A stretch of 64,000 nucleotides of DNA from Blastocladiella emersonii ATCC 22665. Its lineage: Eukaryota; Fungi; Blastocladiomycota. The translations under genes were made by a program, and so were the position numbers. Of this stretch, positions 9,049 through 64,000 are shown piece by piece. Every line of letters starts with the position of its first letter. Within the stretch, counting starts at the first letter, position 1. Location: positions 1,736,001-1,800,000 of the forward strand of contig JANHCV010000004.1 in assembly GCA_025594325.1 (NCBI GenBank). The letters are read 5' to 3'. The notes below the pieces were generated by a model. The model was not told the origin of the DNA. It saw only the letters and a list, made by a program, of their open reading frames with translations, and did not search any database.

Positions 9049-10155
9049 ATGTCGAACACGTCCGGTAAGCCGACCATCTTCGTGTCGTCGTGCGACGGCT
9101 ACTCGGGCACGGCCACGGTCAACAGCCTCCTCGCCCTCGGGCCCGACCGCTACGCCTCGGTCAAGCTCGGCTGCGAGAACAAGGACGAGGCGCACGACTC
9201 GCTCGAGACGGCGGGCGCCAAGAACGTGTCGATCTGCGAGAGTACGTTTTGCCGCTGTGTCTCGCTGCCGTCCTCCTGCTCCTGCCGTCGTCCTCCCGCC
9301 CGCGACCGAGACTGGGACTGATGATGGCTGCCGCCGCGTTGATCCACTCCAGTCCACCCGGAGAAGCTCGACGACCTCAAACAGGTGCTGGACGGGGTGA
9401 CGACGCTGGCGCTGATCCCGCCGACGCGCTCGCGCAAGCACCAGGTGGCCATCAACATGATCCAGGCGGCCGAGCAGTGCGGCGTGCAGAACGCGGTGCT
9501 GCTGTCGTGGACGGGCACGCACGTGGCCGAGGGCGGCTCCGGCAAGCACGACTCGTCCAAGCACGAGCACCTGGCGGCGTGGCAGTCGCTGGAGCGCGCC
9601 TTCCTCGACTCCAAGATCCCGAACAAGGCGGTGGTGCGCGCCAACTTCTACACGCAGAACCTGTTCACGTACGCGCGCCAGCTCGTGCGCGACGGCACGC
9701 TGCCGCTGCCGACCAAGCAGGGCGCGTGGGCGCCGCTCGACGCGCAGACGCTCGGCAAGGCGCTCGCCCAGATGCTCGCCGCGCACCCGATGCAGTCGAC
9801 GTACCGCGGCCAGGTGCTCACGCTGACGGGGCCCGAGGCGCTGACGGGCCAGCAGATGGCCGAGCTGCTCGGCAAGGCGCTCGGCAAGGACGCGGGCCAG
9901 GGCAAAGGCGCCGTCACCTTCAAGGACATTTCGCTCAACGAGGCGCGCTCGCTGCTCGCCAGCGCCACGCCCAAGCTCGACAAGACCGAGATCGAGACGC
10001 TCGTCGAGACGTACGACCTGATCGCCAAGGGCGTCATGTCGCACACGTCCAAGGACCTCGAGCAGATCCTCGACCTCAAGCACCCGTCGTTCCTCGACAC
10101 GATCAAGCGCGACAAGGACGTGATCCTGTGCCTCGCCGGCGACTCGTCGGCCTGA
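9049..10155 (+). CDS. NmrA-like NAD(P)-binding (atypical SDR) protein, 2 exons
   Basis: TIFVSSCDGYSGTATV Rossmann start; VVRANFYTQNL, WAPLDA..LG, LTLTGPEALTGQQMAELLGKALG..VTFKDIS. Confidence 0.8.
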
Positions 10156-10431
10156 GTTGTTCGGCGTGCTTCGATGGCCGTGTGAGGGCCACAGAGTCGT
10201 TGTTGTTTTGTGTGATCTCATCAATCAATCAATCATCATCAAGAGCCCCTCGCGGCTCTCTTCTCCATCACCATCGTCATCTGCGTCCAATCAGGTGTCT
10301 ATTCACTGCCCTCGCCGTCATCACTGCGTCTGGAACTGATGCTGGAACATGGCGCGCATCGCCTCCTGCAACGCGTTCGTCACCTGCGGGATCTCGCGGT
10401 GGCGGAACACGATCTCGACGTCGCCCTCGTC
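9341..10431. repeat. Right arm of inverted duplication (NmrA exon 2, 3' region and INTS9 tail fragment)
   Basis: 10321-10431 is the reverse complement of the INTS9 3' end 5640-5750. Confidence 0.95.
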
Positions 10432-10899
10432 GGCCACCTTCGCAGACCGTGGCCGTCGTAGCGCGGGCGATGGCATTGGTGCCTCCCCTCAACGCTGCTG
10501 CTCGTCCCCGCCGAGCTACCCGGGACGTCGACGCTATCTATATGATGGGCCGGAATGCACGTTTGAGAACTAGATGTTGCGTCACCGAGTCGGACCACCT
10601 GTAGTTCCTACCTGCGCTCTCAAGCGGGCCGGCCCATCAAGACCTCGATTAGTTTTAGCGAGCAGATGGTTTTTAGACTTACGTCTACGATAGGCCGAGC
10701 TCGTGCTCGGAAGCAGCTGCCCATTGATCGAGCAGTTCTGAGTGCTTTACGGCTCAGGCTTGAGTGCGCGGCATGGAAGTCCACACGGCCCTCGTCCTTT
10801 TGTCCGCGGCCATGGCCGCGGACATGACCACTGTGGCGCCTGAGACGATGGCCAACCCAACTACCGTAGAATGAGCTCAAGCGGAGAAAGGATCATACT

Positions 10900-12581
10900 T
10901 TAATTCGGGTACATCTCAATCAGGAAGCGAAAGAGGCGACGGCCATCAACTAAAACAGGTCGGGCCGCGTGGTACAGGTCAATATCCCAGTCGTCATTGC
11001 GCATCCCGCAGGGAACGGCCATCGGTTCCGTCCGGTCCCCGATACTTGTGTCTCGAACGCAAACGTGCGACGAGCGCACCGGAGAGCAGAAGGCTAGATC
11101 GCGGGCGCTTGGGCCCACCGTGTAGAAGACGCATCGCGTCTGATACATGGCCTCATGGCGGTGATCAACAACGCGACCTGTCTTGCGGGCGACACGAAAC
11201 CTGTTCAAAAGGAGGCGAGTTAGTTAGTTAGTTGGCCAGAGCGGATAAGCGAGCACGCCCAAGAGCTCAACGTACTCTGACACGCCGATGATAATATGTC
11301 CAGGTTCATCAGCGACAGGCTTGGGATGAAAGTTGACTTGCCACCAAGACCCGGCAAGAAAACGAGGCCCGAATGTGTAGGACTTGCTCCAGTCCGGATC
11401 AGCCGTCAGGTCGAGCTCAATGGGAATGCGCAGGACCGGTCGGCGAATCGCGTAAACATCATTCATGAGCGAAGCGACCGGGTCCATGCCGTCCGTGCGC
11501 CCGCTATCAGGGCCACAATAATGGTCGTCGCCCACATCGTTAGGCAACCAACCATCGGGAAGCTTCGTATCGACAGGCTTGGCGGCGGTAATCGCCTTCA
11601 TGAGGGCAAGGTGCTCGTACGCAGCCGATTTGACGTACATGCGAAAGAGCGGATCACGGATTGCAAGAGGAGAAGTCACGGCAAGCTGCAATTCGTCTGT
11701 AGAAAAGGCGTGGAAGCCCACAACGCGGACGATATCCGCGACAGCCATGTCAAAGTCGCACATAAACTTGAACCGAGCAAATTCCGAGGGGGCCCAGAAG
11801 TCGACCTTGTTCAGCACCTTGCGTACAAGCTGCGCGGGACATTTCTCGAGAATATGACGCGTGATTGGATGCGGACCGAGGAACTTGAGGTGGGCGACGG
11901 TTGTGTCAAGGAGCGAGCGCATGGGAGCTGGCACGGCGACTGCGTCACAGTAGATGAGCACCCGGGACGCGAGATCAATGAAAGATGTCGGTAGCGGGTC
12001 GGCAGTCGCAGCACAGTCTGCGAGCAAGGCAAAGTAATAGCTGCAGCACGCGTGTACGAGATGGTCCAAGTCTGCGTCGGGAAGCGCGAGCTCGCATTCA
12101 GTCCAGAGATTATGTTCGAAAGCAGCGAGTAGAGCGTACCAAAGTACGATCCGGCCTCGAGGTGATCCAGCAAATTGTCGGGGGTGATGCGCGATGCAAT
12201 CAGCGTCTCGCACCCGCCGTAGAGCGCGACGAGCACCGTCTCCCACGCATAAATCGTGCGCTGAAGGATATGGGCATCGTTGTTGCCACCGGCACGGGTA
12301 ACATCGGAGAGCATAAATTCGAGGCGAAGCACGCAACCCTCGGTCGGGGCGTGCCAGACGTCGTCCAGCAGAGCAGCAAAGAACGGGCACTGGATCAGGA
12401 CGTCACGATGCAAAGAGTAGGTCCGGCCATGCAGCATGAGGCTAAGATCTGCCTGTCGCCCGTCGCAGCCGAGAGCCCGAAAGTGGCGGACGAGCGGGAG
12501 GACTTTCGCGGTGCACTTGCACTCGGTCGCGAGCGTGTCCCGGAAAGACACGAGCTTGGTCGGTTCATCAGATTGCTCCAT
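10900..12581 (-). CDS. BTB/POZ-BACK protein with MATH-like C-terminus (germ-cell-less-like), 3 exons
   Basis: ADLSLMLHGRTYSLHRDVLIQCPFFAALL..W BTB start; FWAPSEFARFKF BACK-like; FGPRFLAGSWWQV MATH-like; lower GC than neighbours. Confidence 0.7.
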
Positions 12582-60475: not shown

Positions 60476-60830
60476 GGTAGTAAGATGGAGATGTGTGCAG
60501 AACTGATACAGGGCTGCTCTAGTTCATAAGAGAGCGTGCGTGTTGGGGGAGGGAGAGAGCGGGCGGACGTGGGCGTCGGCCAGCAGGGCGTGTCTGCGGC
60601 AGCGGGCCGAGTGGGCGTCGGAGCGGCGGCGCCGCATCACGCCGAGGTGAAACGCAGCGTGGCGACCGAGTCGCGGCGCGCCACGTCGCCGCCGAGCGCT
60701 TCTCGACGGTTCCGCCGGCCGCCGTGCTGACTTGACTGTCAGCGTCCCTGCCACGTAGCAGCTCTCGCGAGTGTGGGATCACGCAATCAATCATGTAAAT
60801 GTATCCAAAATGGGGTCTCGTTCAACTAGT

Positions 60831-61495
60831 CTAGCACGTCCCGTTCTCGAGCGAGCACGCGATCCCGGCCTCGACGGCGCCCTTGGCGTCTGCCGCCTCC
60901 GTCTTGGTCCCGGCGCTGGCCGCAATCCGCTCGGCGCGGATCCGCTCGAACACGCTGAGCCAGGCCGCGGGATCCTCGGCGCCGTGGATGCGGAACTTGC
61001 CGCCGGCGACGTCAAAGTCGGGGACGCCGCCGATCCCGGAGCGGCGCGACTTGTCGAGGGTGACGCGGGTCTCGTACCCGAGCTCGCCCAACGCGAGGAA
61101 CTCGAGGGTCTCGTCGCGGCTGAGCCCGGCCTTCTCGGCGCCGTTGGCGAGCACGGCGTGGTCCGACAGCGGGCGGCCCTTTTCAAAGTACTCGACGAAC
61201 AGGGCCTCGACGACCTTGGTCTGGACCCCCGCGCCGTGCGTGGCGAGGACGTGGGTCAGGAGCCGGTGGTAGTCAAAGGTGCTGCCGATCAGGCCCGTGT
61301 TGTCAAACTGGATGCCAACGCTCGCGCCGATGGCGTCCATCTGCGCCCACATGCGCCGGTACCCGGGCCCGAACCGCGCCTCGTACATCTCGGTCTTGGG
61401 TCGCGCCTCGGCCGTCAGCGTCGGGTTCAGGTCGAACGGGTGCCACCGCGTCTCGACGGCGAGCGCTGGCTCGTCCGGGTGCGCCGCGTTGTATC
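60831..61495 (-). CDS. DsbA-like thioredoxin (FrnE type) lacking its 5' CxxC exon in this window
   Basis: RWHPFDLNP..GSTFDYHRLL..LFVEYFE..GIGGVPDF..IHGAEDP; in-frame TGA at about 61504; no CPWC seen upstream. Confidence 0.8.
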
Positions 61496-61496
61496 T

Positions 61497-61600
61497 GGGC
61501 TGTCACTTTCGACATGGCCGCATTACAAGACATGTGAGGGTTCCGTCGGACACACACCCCGAGAGGTGCACCCCAAGACAGTTCCCCCAGGTAGGACGAG
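61497..61600 (-). ncRNA. Candidate Fanzor omegaRNA scaffold at element right end
   Basis: Hairpin-rich stretch downstream of the Fanzor stop, ending in the GGC-CA-TGTC-GAAAGT-GACA-GCC hairpin (61519-61498) just before host DsbA coding sequence; expected position for TnpB/Fanzor RNAs. Confidence 0.5.
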
Positions 61601-61698
61601 TGAGGAGAGAGAGGAAGAAACAAACAACAGCGGGGAAGGAAGGAAGGGAGGGAGGGAGGACCGGACCACGGACACTACCATACGCCAGCCCGCCCGCC

Positions 61699-63360
61699 CT
61701 AGTTGTCGGCCTTGCCGCCCTTGCCGCGACCGCGACGACCGCGATGACCGCGCGCGCGAGCGTGCTCGTACACGCGCGCCTCGGGCGACTCGCGCGCGGC
61801 TGCGTCCACGTCCATGGCGGTCGCCTGCTCGTTGTTGTTGCTTCTGCTGCTGCTGCTGCTGGCCGTGGTGGTCGTGGCACCCCGTGCGGGCACCATCGCC
61901 GCCATGACCGCGCGCGAGACCTGGTCCTTGGTGTACTGCTGCACCGCAGCCCGCCGAGGCGCCGAGCCGAGCCCCGCGGCCCGCCCCGCCGCCGTAATCG
62001 TCATCGTCGTCGCAGCCGAAAAAGTCGGGCGACCCGACGTCGCAGCGCGAGGCTGGACAGTCGAGGCCGACGAGGGCTGCACGTTGACGAGGTCGGGCAA
62101 CAAGGACCCAGGGGACCCAGGGGACGCGACGCGACGGCGCATGCGGGACGCGGAAGCGGGCGCGGAGCGAGACAAGGAAGACGCACTTGGCGATCTCGAT
62201 CGGCTTCTTGACGCCGAGCTTGAGGATGACGAGCTGCTTGGCGAGGAGGACCGACTGCGGGCTTGGCTGTTGGCGTCGTCTTGATCCAGGTCCATGTTGT
62301 TGAGGCCGTGGTCGTTGCCATCCTCATCACCTCCTGCACCCGGACCACCATCACCACCATCACCACCACCACCTGGACCGTCGGCGGGCTCGTCCGCGTA
62401 GCCGGGGTCGCCCTCGAACCGCAGCAGGTTGCTCGCGTACAGCGCAATGTTGAGCGCGGCGTTGCGGTCGCAGTTGAGGGCGTGGCAGCACCGCCGGCAC
62501 ACCTTCTTGGCCCACGTCTTGCCGGGCTGGTGCGGGTCCGTGCCGAGGTCGCACGAGCCGTTCTTGCCGTTGTCGGGAGCGACCGCCGCGCACGCGCAGC
62601 ACCGCTTCGACGTGTAGGCCTCGTTGACAATGTGGATGTTGACCTTGCGCTTGCGCATCTCGCGGATGAACTCCTTGACGGGGCCCTTGGACTTGGCCTT
62701 GATGTGGCCGAACTCGTTGGCGTGGCCGATGAGCACGACCGCGTCGCGCAGCATGTTGGCGATGTTGGACCACCACTGCTGCCGCCACGACAGCTGGTTG
62801 AAGTGGCGGCGCTTGTGGGCGAGGCGGTTCTGGGTCGTGTACACGGGCTCAAAGTACTTGGTGTTGGTCTGCGTCATGGCGATCTTGTCCTTGGACTTGG
62901 CCGCCTTGGACATCTTGGCGTACACGGGGTCGAGGTTCTTCTCGGCGCGGACGCGCTCCTCGTCGGCCTTGGCCTGGGTGCCGCCCGTCTGGCCCTGGAA
63001 CCGCCGCGTCGAGATCTGCAGGTAGCGGTACTCGCCGAGGCCCTTGGGGTGCGTGATCACCTTGAGCACCTCCTCCTTGAAGGCGAGCTTGTTGGCCTCG
63101 GACAGCGGCGCCGGGCCGTCGCCGTGCGTCGCTTGTCGTCGGTGGACGAGCGAGCGCGCGAACACAAACTCGAGGATGATGAGCGAAATGAAGTTGTTGA
63201 CGCCCGGGTCGATGCCGACCAGGTACTTGCCGCGCGCGACGCGGATGGGCTCGTTCTTGATCCCGAACTCCTTGACGGCCTTGCGCACGTTGAAGCCCAT
63301 GAAGTCGCCCGACCCGCCGCCCGCCTCGTCGCCCGCGTCGCCCTCCTCCTCCTCCACCAC
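61699..63360 (-). CDS. Fanzor (eukaryotic TnpB-like RNA-guided RuvC nuclease); N-terminal REC/WED part not evident
   Basis: LVGIDPG (D 63210-63208), VVLIG..GPVKEF..IVNEAYTSKRCCAC (E 62622-62620), VCRRC..CDRNAALNI (D 62469-62467). Confidence 0.92.
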   Translation of the reverse strand: MVEEEEGDAGDEAGGGSGDFMGFNVRKAVKEFGIKNEPIRVARGKYLVGIDPGVNNFISLIILEFVFARSLVHRRQATHGDGPAPLSEANKLAFKEEVLKVITHPKGLGEYRYLQISTRRFQGQTGGTQAKADEERVRAEKNLDPVYAKMSKAAKSKDKIAMTQTNTKYFEPVYTTQNRLAHKRRHFNQLSWRQQWWSNIANMLRDAVVLIGHANEFGHIKAKSKGPVKEFIREMRKRKVNIHIVNEAYTSKRCCACAAVAPDNGKNGSCDLGTDPHQPGKTWAKKVCRRCCHALNCDRNAALNIALYASNLLRFEGDPGYADEPADGPGGGGDGGDGGPGAGGDEDGNDHGLNNMDLDQDDANSQARSRSSSPSSSSSSSSASRSRSRSPSASSLSRSAPASASRMRRRVASPGSPGSLLPDLVNVQPSSASTVQPRAATSGRPTFSAATTMTITAAGRAAGLGSAPRRAAVQQYTKDQVSRAVMAAMVPARGATTTTASSSSSRSNNNEQATAMDVDAAARESPEARVYEHARARGHRGRRGRGKGGKADN

Positions 63361-64000
63361 GCTCGTCAAGCAGTGGGGTGCCGTAAAGGCCCGCAGCGTC
63401 GCGTTCCGCGGGATCGACAAGCACAAGATCCAAAAACTGCTGACCGACTCGGCGCTCGTGCGCGACGAGCTCAAGACCAGCCAGTTCCGGCTCGAGGCCG
63501 TCTCCTACTCGATCCGCACCGCCATGCAGGGCCCGACGTCCCTGGCCGCGGGACCCGTGACCAGCAGCATGGGCGCGGGTGGGCCGGTGCTCATGGCGGC
63601 GTACCACGAGATCTTCGCCCGCGCCGAGGCGGCGCGCGCCGAGGAGGTCGCCGCGCAGACGTTTGTCGACGTGGATGAGCTGGTACCCACGCCGGGTCCA
63701 CCTGCTGCTCCTGCCGCCGTCGCCCCCGGCCCGATCCCCGCCGTACCCGAGGACTTTTTGTATGGCAGCGTCTTCTCGAAGAACGCGGCCGTTCGGGCTC
63801 GGACTCGGCCTCGGTCAACGACCGCAGCAGCCGAGTACCTCGACCATCACCCCGCTGACGAGGATGACGGCGATGGAGCTGCTGCCGCCGCTGTTGCTGC
63901 TGTTGCAGCTGCTGTAGCTGCTGCTGCTGCTGCGGCGGCGGCGAGCGCTCAACCTGCTGCAACGGGTGCCGCTTCCGCGGGTGGTGGTCGCGGCCGTCAA
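63299..64000 (+). CDS. Unidentified plus-strand ORF head-to-head with Fanzor; runs off window
   Basis: No stop from 63026 to 64000; protein-like from about 63361 (LVKQWGAVKARSVAFRGIDKHKIQKLLTDSALVRDELK..), Ala-rich end. Confidence 0.5.
   Translation, partial: MKSPDPPPASSPASPSSSSTTLVKQWGAVKARSVAFRGIDKHKIQKLLTDSALVRDELKTSQFRLEAVSYSIRTAMQGPTSLAAGPVTSSMGAGGPVLMAAYHEIFARAEAARAEEVAAQTFVDVDELVPTPGPPAAPAAVAPGPIPAVPEDFLYGSVFSKNAAVRARTRPRSTTAAAEYLDHHPADEDDGDGAAAAAVAAVAAAVAAAAAAAAASAQPAATGAASAGGGRGRQ

Follow-up and report, generated by a model that had tools for sequence, protein, structure and literature searches.

What is the noncoding DNA that separates the stop codon of a Fanzor gene from a DsbA-type coding sequence in Blastocladiella emersonii ATCC 22665, and could it encode an omegaRNA whose guide is read from the host sequence beyond it? 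The window considered here is a 64,000-nucleotide stretch of contig JANHCV010000004.1 (assembly GCA_025594325.1), with a G+C content of 66%. The locus was examined over 21.6 kb as the reversed DNA of the window (locus L001; the window coordinate equals 73301 minus the L001 coordinate), and the only sequencing runs found to contain the stretch, four DNA contig sets from one sample, were compared with positions 60700 to 64000 at a likeness of at least 80%. All coordinates below are window coordinates unless a locus name precedes them.

The reading that we prefer, with a probability of roughly one-half, is that the tail is the noncoding right end of a relic Fanzor copy, one that has lost its head and abuts a truncated paralogue of DsbA. 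The ∼1.87 kb from 61490 to 63355 would be a 5′-truncated copy of a Fanzor (the eukaryotic TnpB-like nuclease) that retains the RuvC/zinc-ribbon half of the protein, a long disordered C-terminal extension, and a 209-nt noncoding 3′ end. The 3′ end of the unit would in turn be joined, through a 4-nt TACA overlap, to a DsbA/FrnE paralogue lacking its first 36 codons. The features of the locus are listed in Table 1. If the tail were instead an active omegaRNA, the locus would show a Fanzor guide that in nature reads a host coding sequence.

Table 1. Features of the Fanzor-DsbA locus, in window coordinates
Feature	Position	Strand	Basis
Acidic linker preceding the core, at which the copy ends	63298..63355	-	P0005 alignment, contig X3 record 21
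Fanzor/TnpB-type core: RuvC-I GIDPG, RuvC-II NEAYTSK, CxxC..CxxC zinc ribbon, RuvC-III CDRNAA	62392..63297	-	Pfam PF07282
Low-complexity C-terminal extension, ∼230 codons, S/T/G-rich, with a basic cluster at the end, then stop	61699..62391	-	Translation
209-nt noncoding tail of the putative Fanzor unit, ending in GATACA	61490..61698	-	Sequence, folds, contigs
TACA, 4-nt overlap of the putative repeated-unit end with DsbA codons 37-38	61490..61493	-	Homology edges
DsbA/FrnE-like paralogue fragment without the first 36 codons, otherwise an open frame	60831..61493	-	Pfam PF01323, paralogue P0004
Putative guide, should the tail yield an omegaRNA (ACGCGGCGCACCCGGACGAG)	61470..61489	-	Unique in the window

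Fanzor gene and its N-terminal truncation

The Fanzor/TnpB-type open reading frame, on the minus strand, is annotated as protein H9P43_004398. Its core is matched by Pfam PF07282 at 3.5e-7. When P0001 was aligned with nine B. emersonii relatives, D31 (in GIDPG), E227 (in NEAYTSK), and D278 (in CDRNAA) fell in conserved columns, i.e., the RuvC Asp/Glu/Asp triad of a Fanzor/TnpB nuclease is present, and the zinc-ribbon cysteines C234, C237, C268, and C271 are invariant between RuvC-II and RuvC-III. A profile of the family matched TnpB and Cas12f structure chains over RuvC-II, the zinc ribbon, and RuvC-III, and it matched SpuFz1 weakly. A phmmer search of the Fanzor core against the PDB gave no match, and TnpB was reached by the profile only. 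Word-index protein searches, limited by a length filter, gave the gene itself and a single 40% paralogue. An exhaustive protein search returned 22 relatives; the ten that were looked up are all from B. emersonii, and the closest is 48% identical, with none above that value.

These relatives are 500 to 1055 aa long and align to the core only. Each has 220 to 660 residues of its own before RuvC-I, compared to ∼30 to 50 in the window protein, and in P0005 (1055 aa), the closest full-length relative, the alignment begins at residue 661. The N-terminal residues of the relatives, in which the WED and REC lobes would be sought, align nowhere in the 21.6-kb locus, and the coding strand switches beyond ∼63355. 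The WED and REC lobes of such nucleases hold the omegaRNA and the guide-target duplex. Judged from these alignments, which demonstrate both the protein family and the truncation, the local Fanzor keeps the RuvC/zinc-ribbon half only, and the omegaRNA-holding WED/REC part is missing.

At the other end of the protein, the C-terminal extension is not common to the relatives; P0005 has a comparable tail, disordered and with a basic end. The reading frame closes with a TAG at 61701-61699 on the minus strand. Directly upstream of the beheaded Fanzor, a coding-looking frame occupies the plus strand at 63360-64000. The plus-strand gene annotated there starts at 63524, encodes 894 aa without a Pfam family, and is divergent from the Fanzor gene at a distance of ∼220 nt.

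Noncoding tail

An intact element of the Fanzor kind carries the template of its omegaRNA scaffold in its 3′ end and takes the guide sequence from the flank. Since the window tail occupies the corresponding place, it plausibly descends, by analogy, from an omegaRNA template. The preliminary description went further and proposed that the tail is itself a structured scaffold with several stems. On the minus strand, the tail has a G+C-rich hairpin at 61698-61650 and a pyrimidine tract at ∼61660-61590; the proposed stems are all present as described, namely GGGGTGCACCTC at 61574-61563, TCCGACGGA at 61550-61542 with TGTG/CACA on its flanks, and GGCCATGTCGAAAGTGACAGCC at 61519-61498, followed by CAGATACAACGCGG. 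The fold, on the other hand, is no better than that of shuffled sequence. The minimum free energy of 61497-61600 gave z = +0.49 in the sense direction and +0.63 in the antisense direction, and that of 61476-61698 gave z = +0.79 (sense). In windows of 80 nt, the part claimed as scaffold had z values between 0 and +2, with none below 0; only the first 80 nt after the stop codon reached z = -2.5, on the sense strand. An Rfam search of the tail returned no match at E values up to 1. With no excess folding, no Rfam match, and no likeness to the tail of the Fanzor family described below as family B, the reading of the tail as a structured omegaRNA scaffold is unsupported.

No terminal inverted repeat was found within the window copy, as expected of a copy whose left end is missing. 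Compared with the tail by blastn or by eye, the 3′ flanks of the proteins P0002, P0006, and P0007 showed no likeness to it. Nor did blastn find further copies of the Fanzor unit in the window or in the other loci compared, and the repeats within 61300-64000 were low-complexity families only. The CT tract was considered as a mark of Fanzor elements and rejected, such tracts being common both upstream and downstream of ordinary genes here.

Evidence for a possible second copy

The contig sets suggest a repeat at this locus. In sets X1 and X2, a 32-kb contig spans the DsbA side unbroken and ends at 61550, and the next contig starts at 61521; the 30 nt that the two contigs have in common (61521-61550) are the overlap left by a branch of a k = 31 graph, and the contigs to the right of this break are short. 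Variant contigs that are 96 to 99% alike cover 61490-61602 (X3 record 18), 61937-62337 (record 19), and 62717-63355 (record 21). Record 18 is ∼97% alike on 61490-61602 only, its first 253 nt not being on the window. The last 67 nt of record 21, beyond 63355, are likewise not on the window and read as an acidic run on the Fanzor strand. At positions 62761 and 62787, the two versions have about the same depth in X1 as well as in X2.

The simplest reading of the variant contigs suggests a sister copy that matches the window over 61490-63355 and is bordered by different DNA at either end. It would follow that 61490 is the 3′ end of a repeated 1.87-kb unit. The contigs concerned are a few short-read contigs from one sample, with depths that are not cleanly two-fold over the tail, and we regard the second copy whose likeness ends at 61490 as partly demonstrated at the level of sequence. 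The variant that continues past 63355 is probably a longer sister copy, to which no annotated protein corresponds.

Junction with the DsbA paralogue

The DsbA-type coding sequence said to follow the tail directly is indeed there. Homology to the intact paralogue detected by blastn (L003/L004) begins at 61493 (TACAAC) and ends precisely with the stop codon at 60831, at 79.8% identity, and the start of the DsbA homology can be regarded as demonstrated by this alignment. Pfam PF01323 (DSBA-like) matches the open reading frame at 60831-61502 with 1.4e-18 over profile positions 29-184, which assigns it to the family. The intact DsbA/FrnE paralogue is H9P43_006158 (P0004), an intronless gene for 255 aa, and it is 71% identical in protein sequence to the window fragment. 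Its active site, CPFC, is at residues 21-24; the window fragment begins at the equivalent of residue 37, and a search for an N-terminal CxxC active site found C[PG][WFYH]C in no frame of the 21.6-kb locus. An in-frame TGA at 61505-61503 lies just upstream of the fragment. Over the retained part, comparison with the intact paralogue gave dN/dS of 0.37 at dS of ∼0.48.

A sharp tail boundary near 61497, with different flanks, had been predicted. The DsbA homology edge at 61493 bears on this and also appears as a loose end in three contig sets; the one variant contig that crosses the boundary has an unlike flank from 61490, and X1 and X2 break at 61521-61550. In these respects the boundary seems to lie close to where it was predicted, the variant edge coming from a few short contigs of one sample. 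Since the 5′ piece of DsbA is absent within 10 kb across the element, beyond the Fanzor unit, the junction is not that of a simple insertion.

A different origin for the DsbA-proximal half of the tail has to be weighed here. The stretch from 61497 to ∼61600 might have begun as 5′ coding sequence of the DsbA paralogue and decayed since, in which case the Fanzor unit would end near 61600 and the pyrimidine tract would be the promoter or 5′ untranslated region. In the DsbA frame, MAFFT and an anchored alignment both set GTGTCCGACGG (V S D G; 61553-61543) opposite missing codons of the paralogue, where 10 of 11 bases agree and the colinear offset stays within 1 nt; they do the same with CGA AAG (R K) at 61511-61506. 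A 70-nt alignment anchored at the homology edge reached z = 2.6, a value that 25 of 2000 shuffles equalled or bettered, but an unanchored local alignment to the 5′ region of the paralogue was not significant, and the 34 residues concerned gave no Pfam match. The 3′ flanks of the two paralogues, which are presumably homologous, are equally weakly alike (z = 2 to 4), so 61497-61553 could be neutrally decayed DsbA. The third-codon-position GC there, ∼57% when counted by hand, argues against former coding sequence. CT-rich tracts are usual within 200 nt upstream of start codons in this genome, as this origin would have it. Yet record 18 shares 61490-61602 (∼97%) next to unlike DNA, which is unexpected of a unique DsbA remnant, and the abrupt change from constrained to decayed sequence, together with the in-frame TGA, would need an explanation of its own. 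We consider decay of DsbA sequence unlikely as the source of this stretch.

The NCBI gene model implies yet another arrangement, in which 61678-61500 is an intron of the DsbA gene. A one-codon exon (ATG at 61681-61679) precedes a GT...CAG intron, and translation resumes with CCC AGA TAC. The annotated 223-aa product, MPRYNAA... (P0003), fits this model exactly, and the sequence contains a GTAGTG donor as well as a TGACAG acceptor region. Gene predictors nevertheless typically resort to such one-codon first exons to obtain a start codon, and the paralogue is intronless. The one-codon exon and its 179-nt intron are probably an annotation artefact, and a genuine intron at this position seems to us extremely improbable.

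The gene H9P43_006158 is present twice, with identical protein, at L003:6001-6768 and L004:6001-6768 in opposite orientation ∼28 kb apart on contig JANHCV010000007.1. The next downstream gene is the same at both copies, which suggests that the pair is a recent inverted segmental duplication. The 3′ flanks of both DsbA paralogues are otherwise diverged and keep T(T)GATACATTT some 20 to 25 nt after the stop codon (window 60790-60830; L003:6769-6800); this sequence may be a 3′-end processing signal. The GATACA of these DsbA 3′ flanks is the same hexamer that ends the Fanzor tails.

Would-be guide and target

If the relic reading is set aside for the moment and the tail is taken as a working right end, the 20 nt beyond it would be the guide. 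This 20-mer (61489-61470) is unique in the 64-kb window. The guide had been expected to match the uninserted DsbA allele. It differs from the only intact DsbA paralogue at 4 of 20 positions (6, 8, 10, and 15), and the 21.6-kb locus showed no empty target site; neither comparison bears out the expected match.

TnpB homing, as published for IS200/IS605 elements, consists in the cutting of the vacated site with a flank guide produced from the right end (10.1101/2023.11.20.567912). The geometry invoked at the window is like that of IS200/IS605 TnpB, in which the right end supplies the scaffold and the flank the guide. Unlike the homing described there, the window offers no empty site (in 21.6 kb), the 5′ part of DsbA does not lie across the element, and the nuclease is beheaded. 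Homing or retention at the window locus would be the published TnpB model carried over by analogy. What holds of the combined omegaRNA and homing proposal is that the tail seemingly belongs to the Fanzor unit and ends sharply at DsbA; the structure, the WED/REC lobes, the DsbA 5′ piece, and the guide match do not bear it out.

The best fungal comparison is with the Spu-1 Fanzor1 loci of Spizellomyces punctatus, at which a 75-nt scaffold is conserved over dozens of loci with 30-nt inverted repeats on the flanks (Saito et al. 2023, PMC10432273). The Spu-1 omegaRNA was detected by small-RNA sequencing and pull-down, and partial Fanzor copies and ghost loci without an open reading frame were reported in Spizellomyces (PMC10432273). 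As at Spu-1, the window has a fungal Fanzor reading frame followed by a noncoding stretch to the right end of the element, the guide would be the first 14 to 20 nt of the flank, and partial Fanzor copies stand beside full-length ones (PMC10432273). In contrast to Spu-1, the window unit has at most two copies and no excess structure.

Could the tail nonetheless be a working minus-strand omegaRNA gene whose RNA, with the guide ACGCGGCGCACC..., is taken up in trans by the nuclease that an intact sister copy encodes? Such loading would resemble the ORF-less ghost loci of Spizellomyces. The position of the tail and its sharp end fit the OMEGA layout, and there appears to be a sister copy extending upstream past 63355. 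The terminal GATACA could also pair with TGTGTC at 61554-61549, as in the hairpin of family B, but this pairing was spotted post hoc and (GT)n runs are common. The tail has neither excess structure nor an Rfam match, the local protein lacks WED and REC, and the only other DsbA-like target has the 4 mismatches in 20 noted above. We judge a working omegaRNA gene improbable. Very improbable, in our estimate, are two bolder variants: that the beheaded copy is a ghost guide locus aimed at a host DsbA-family gene via a sister Fanzor, or that TACA is the scar of microhomology-mediated end joining at a Fanzor-associated break. If true, the former would mean that an OMEGA guide of a eukaryote targets a host gene of the DsbA family, and the latter, if true, that the genome of a fungus directly records Fanzor activity.

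Comparison with family B

For the relic reading, the nearest other Fanzor family of the same genome serves as a yardstick. Family B comprises H9P43_003300 (P0005, locus L005), which is full length at 1055 aa, and H9P43_009324 (P0002, locus L002), which is 5′ truncated. The two loci are 92.7% identical in DNA over 1.7 kb. The L002 copy (10001-11542) starts at the equivalent of P0005 residue 566, and its likeness to L005 begins abruptly at L002 9960/L005 7691. After the stop codon, both copies have a 111-nt tail (L005:9313-9423 and L002:11543-11653) that is 99% identical and ends sharply after GATACA; the heads of the two copies differ. At the level of their alignments, the two copies confirm, for one pair, that a tail can be kept while the head is lost. 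The family-B tail forms a long predicted hairpin (z = -3.7, with 0 of 200 shuffles as good), and no terminal inverted repeat involving the right end was found in L005.

The window copy is like family B in having a lost head, a kept tail, a CT run after the stop codon, and a GATACA end. It is unlike family B in that its tail is 209 nt rather than 111 nt, cannot be aligned to the family-B tail, and folds at the level of chance rather than into a hairpin; the proteins are 47% identical. An end-anchored comparison of the two tails gave p of ∼0.013 to 0.019, with the GATACA anchor chosen post hoc, and the best local match between them is the CT run (7 of 1000 shuffles). With default filters, a covariance model built on the family-B tail had no match in the window; with the filters off, its best match there scored 3.2 bits (E = 0.24).

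The family-B tail is a much better candidate for an omegaRNA and right end than the window tail, and, as the locus indicates, a real omegaRNA in this genome is better sought in family B. Under the relic reading, the window locus itself mainly documents the decay of Fanzors in Blastocladiella, with heads lost, tails kept, and sharp junctions with host genes. Within family B, the truncated copy H9P43_009324 reads VIYPG where the full-length copy reads VIDPG, i.e., a Tyr replaces the RuvC-I Asp.
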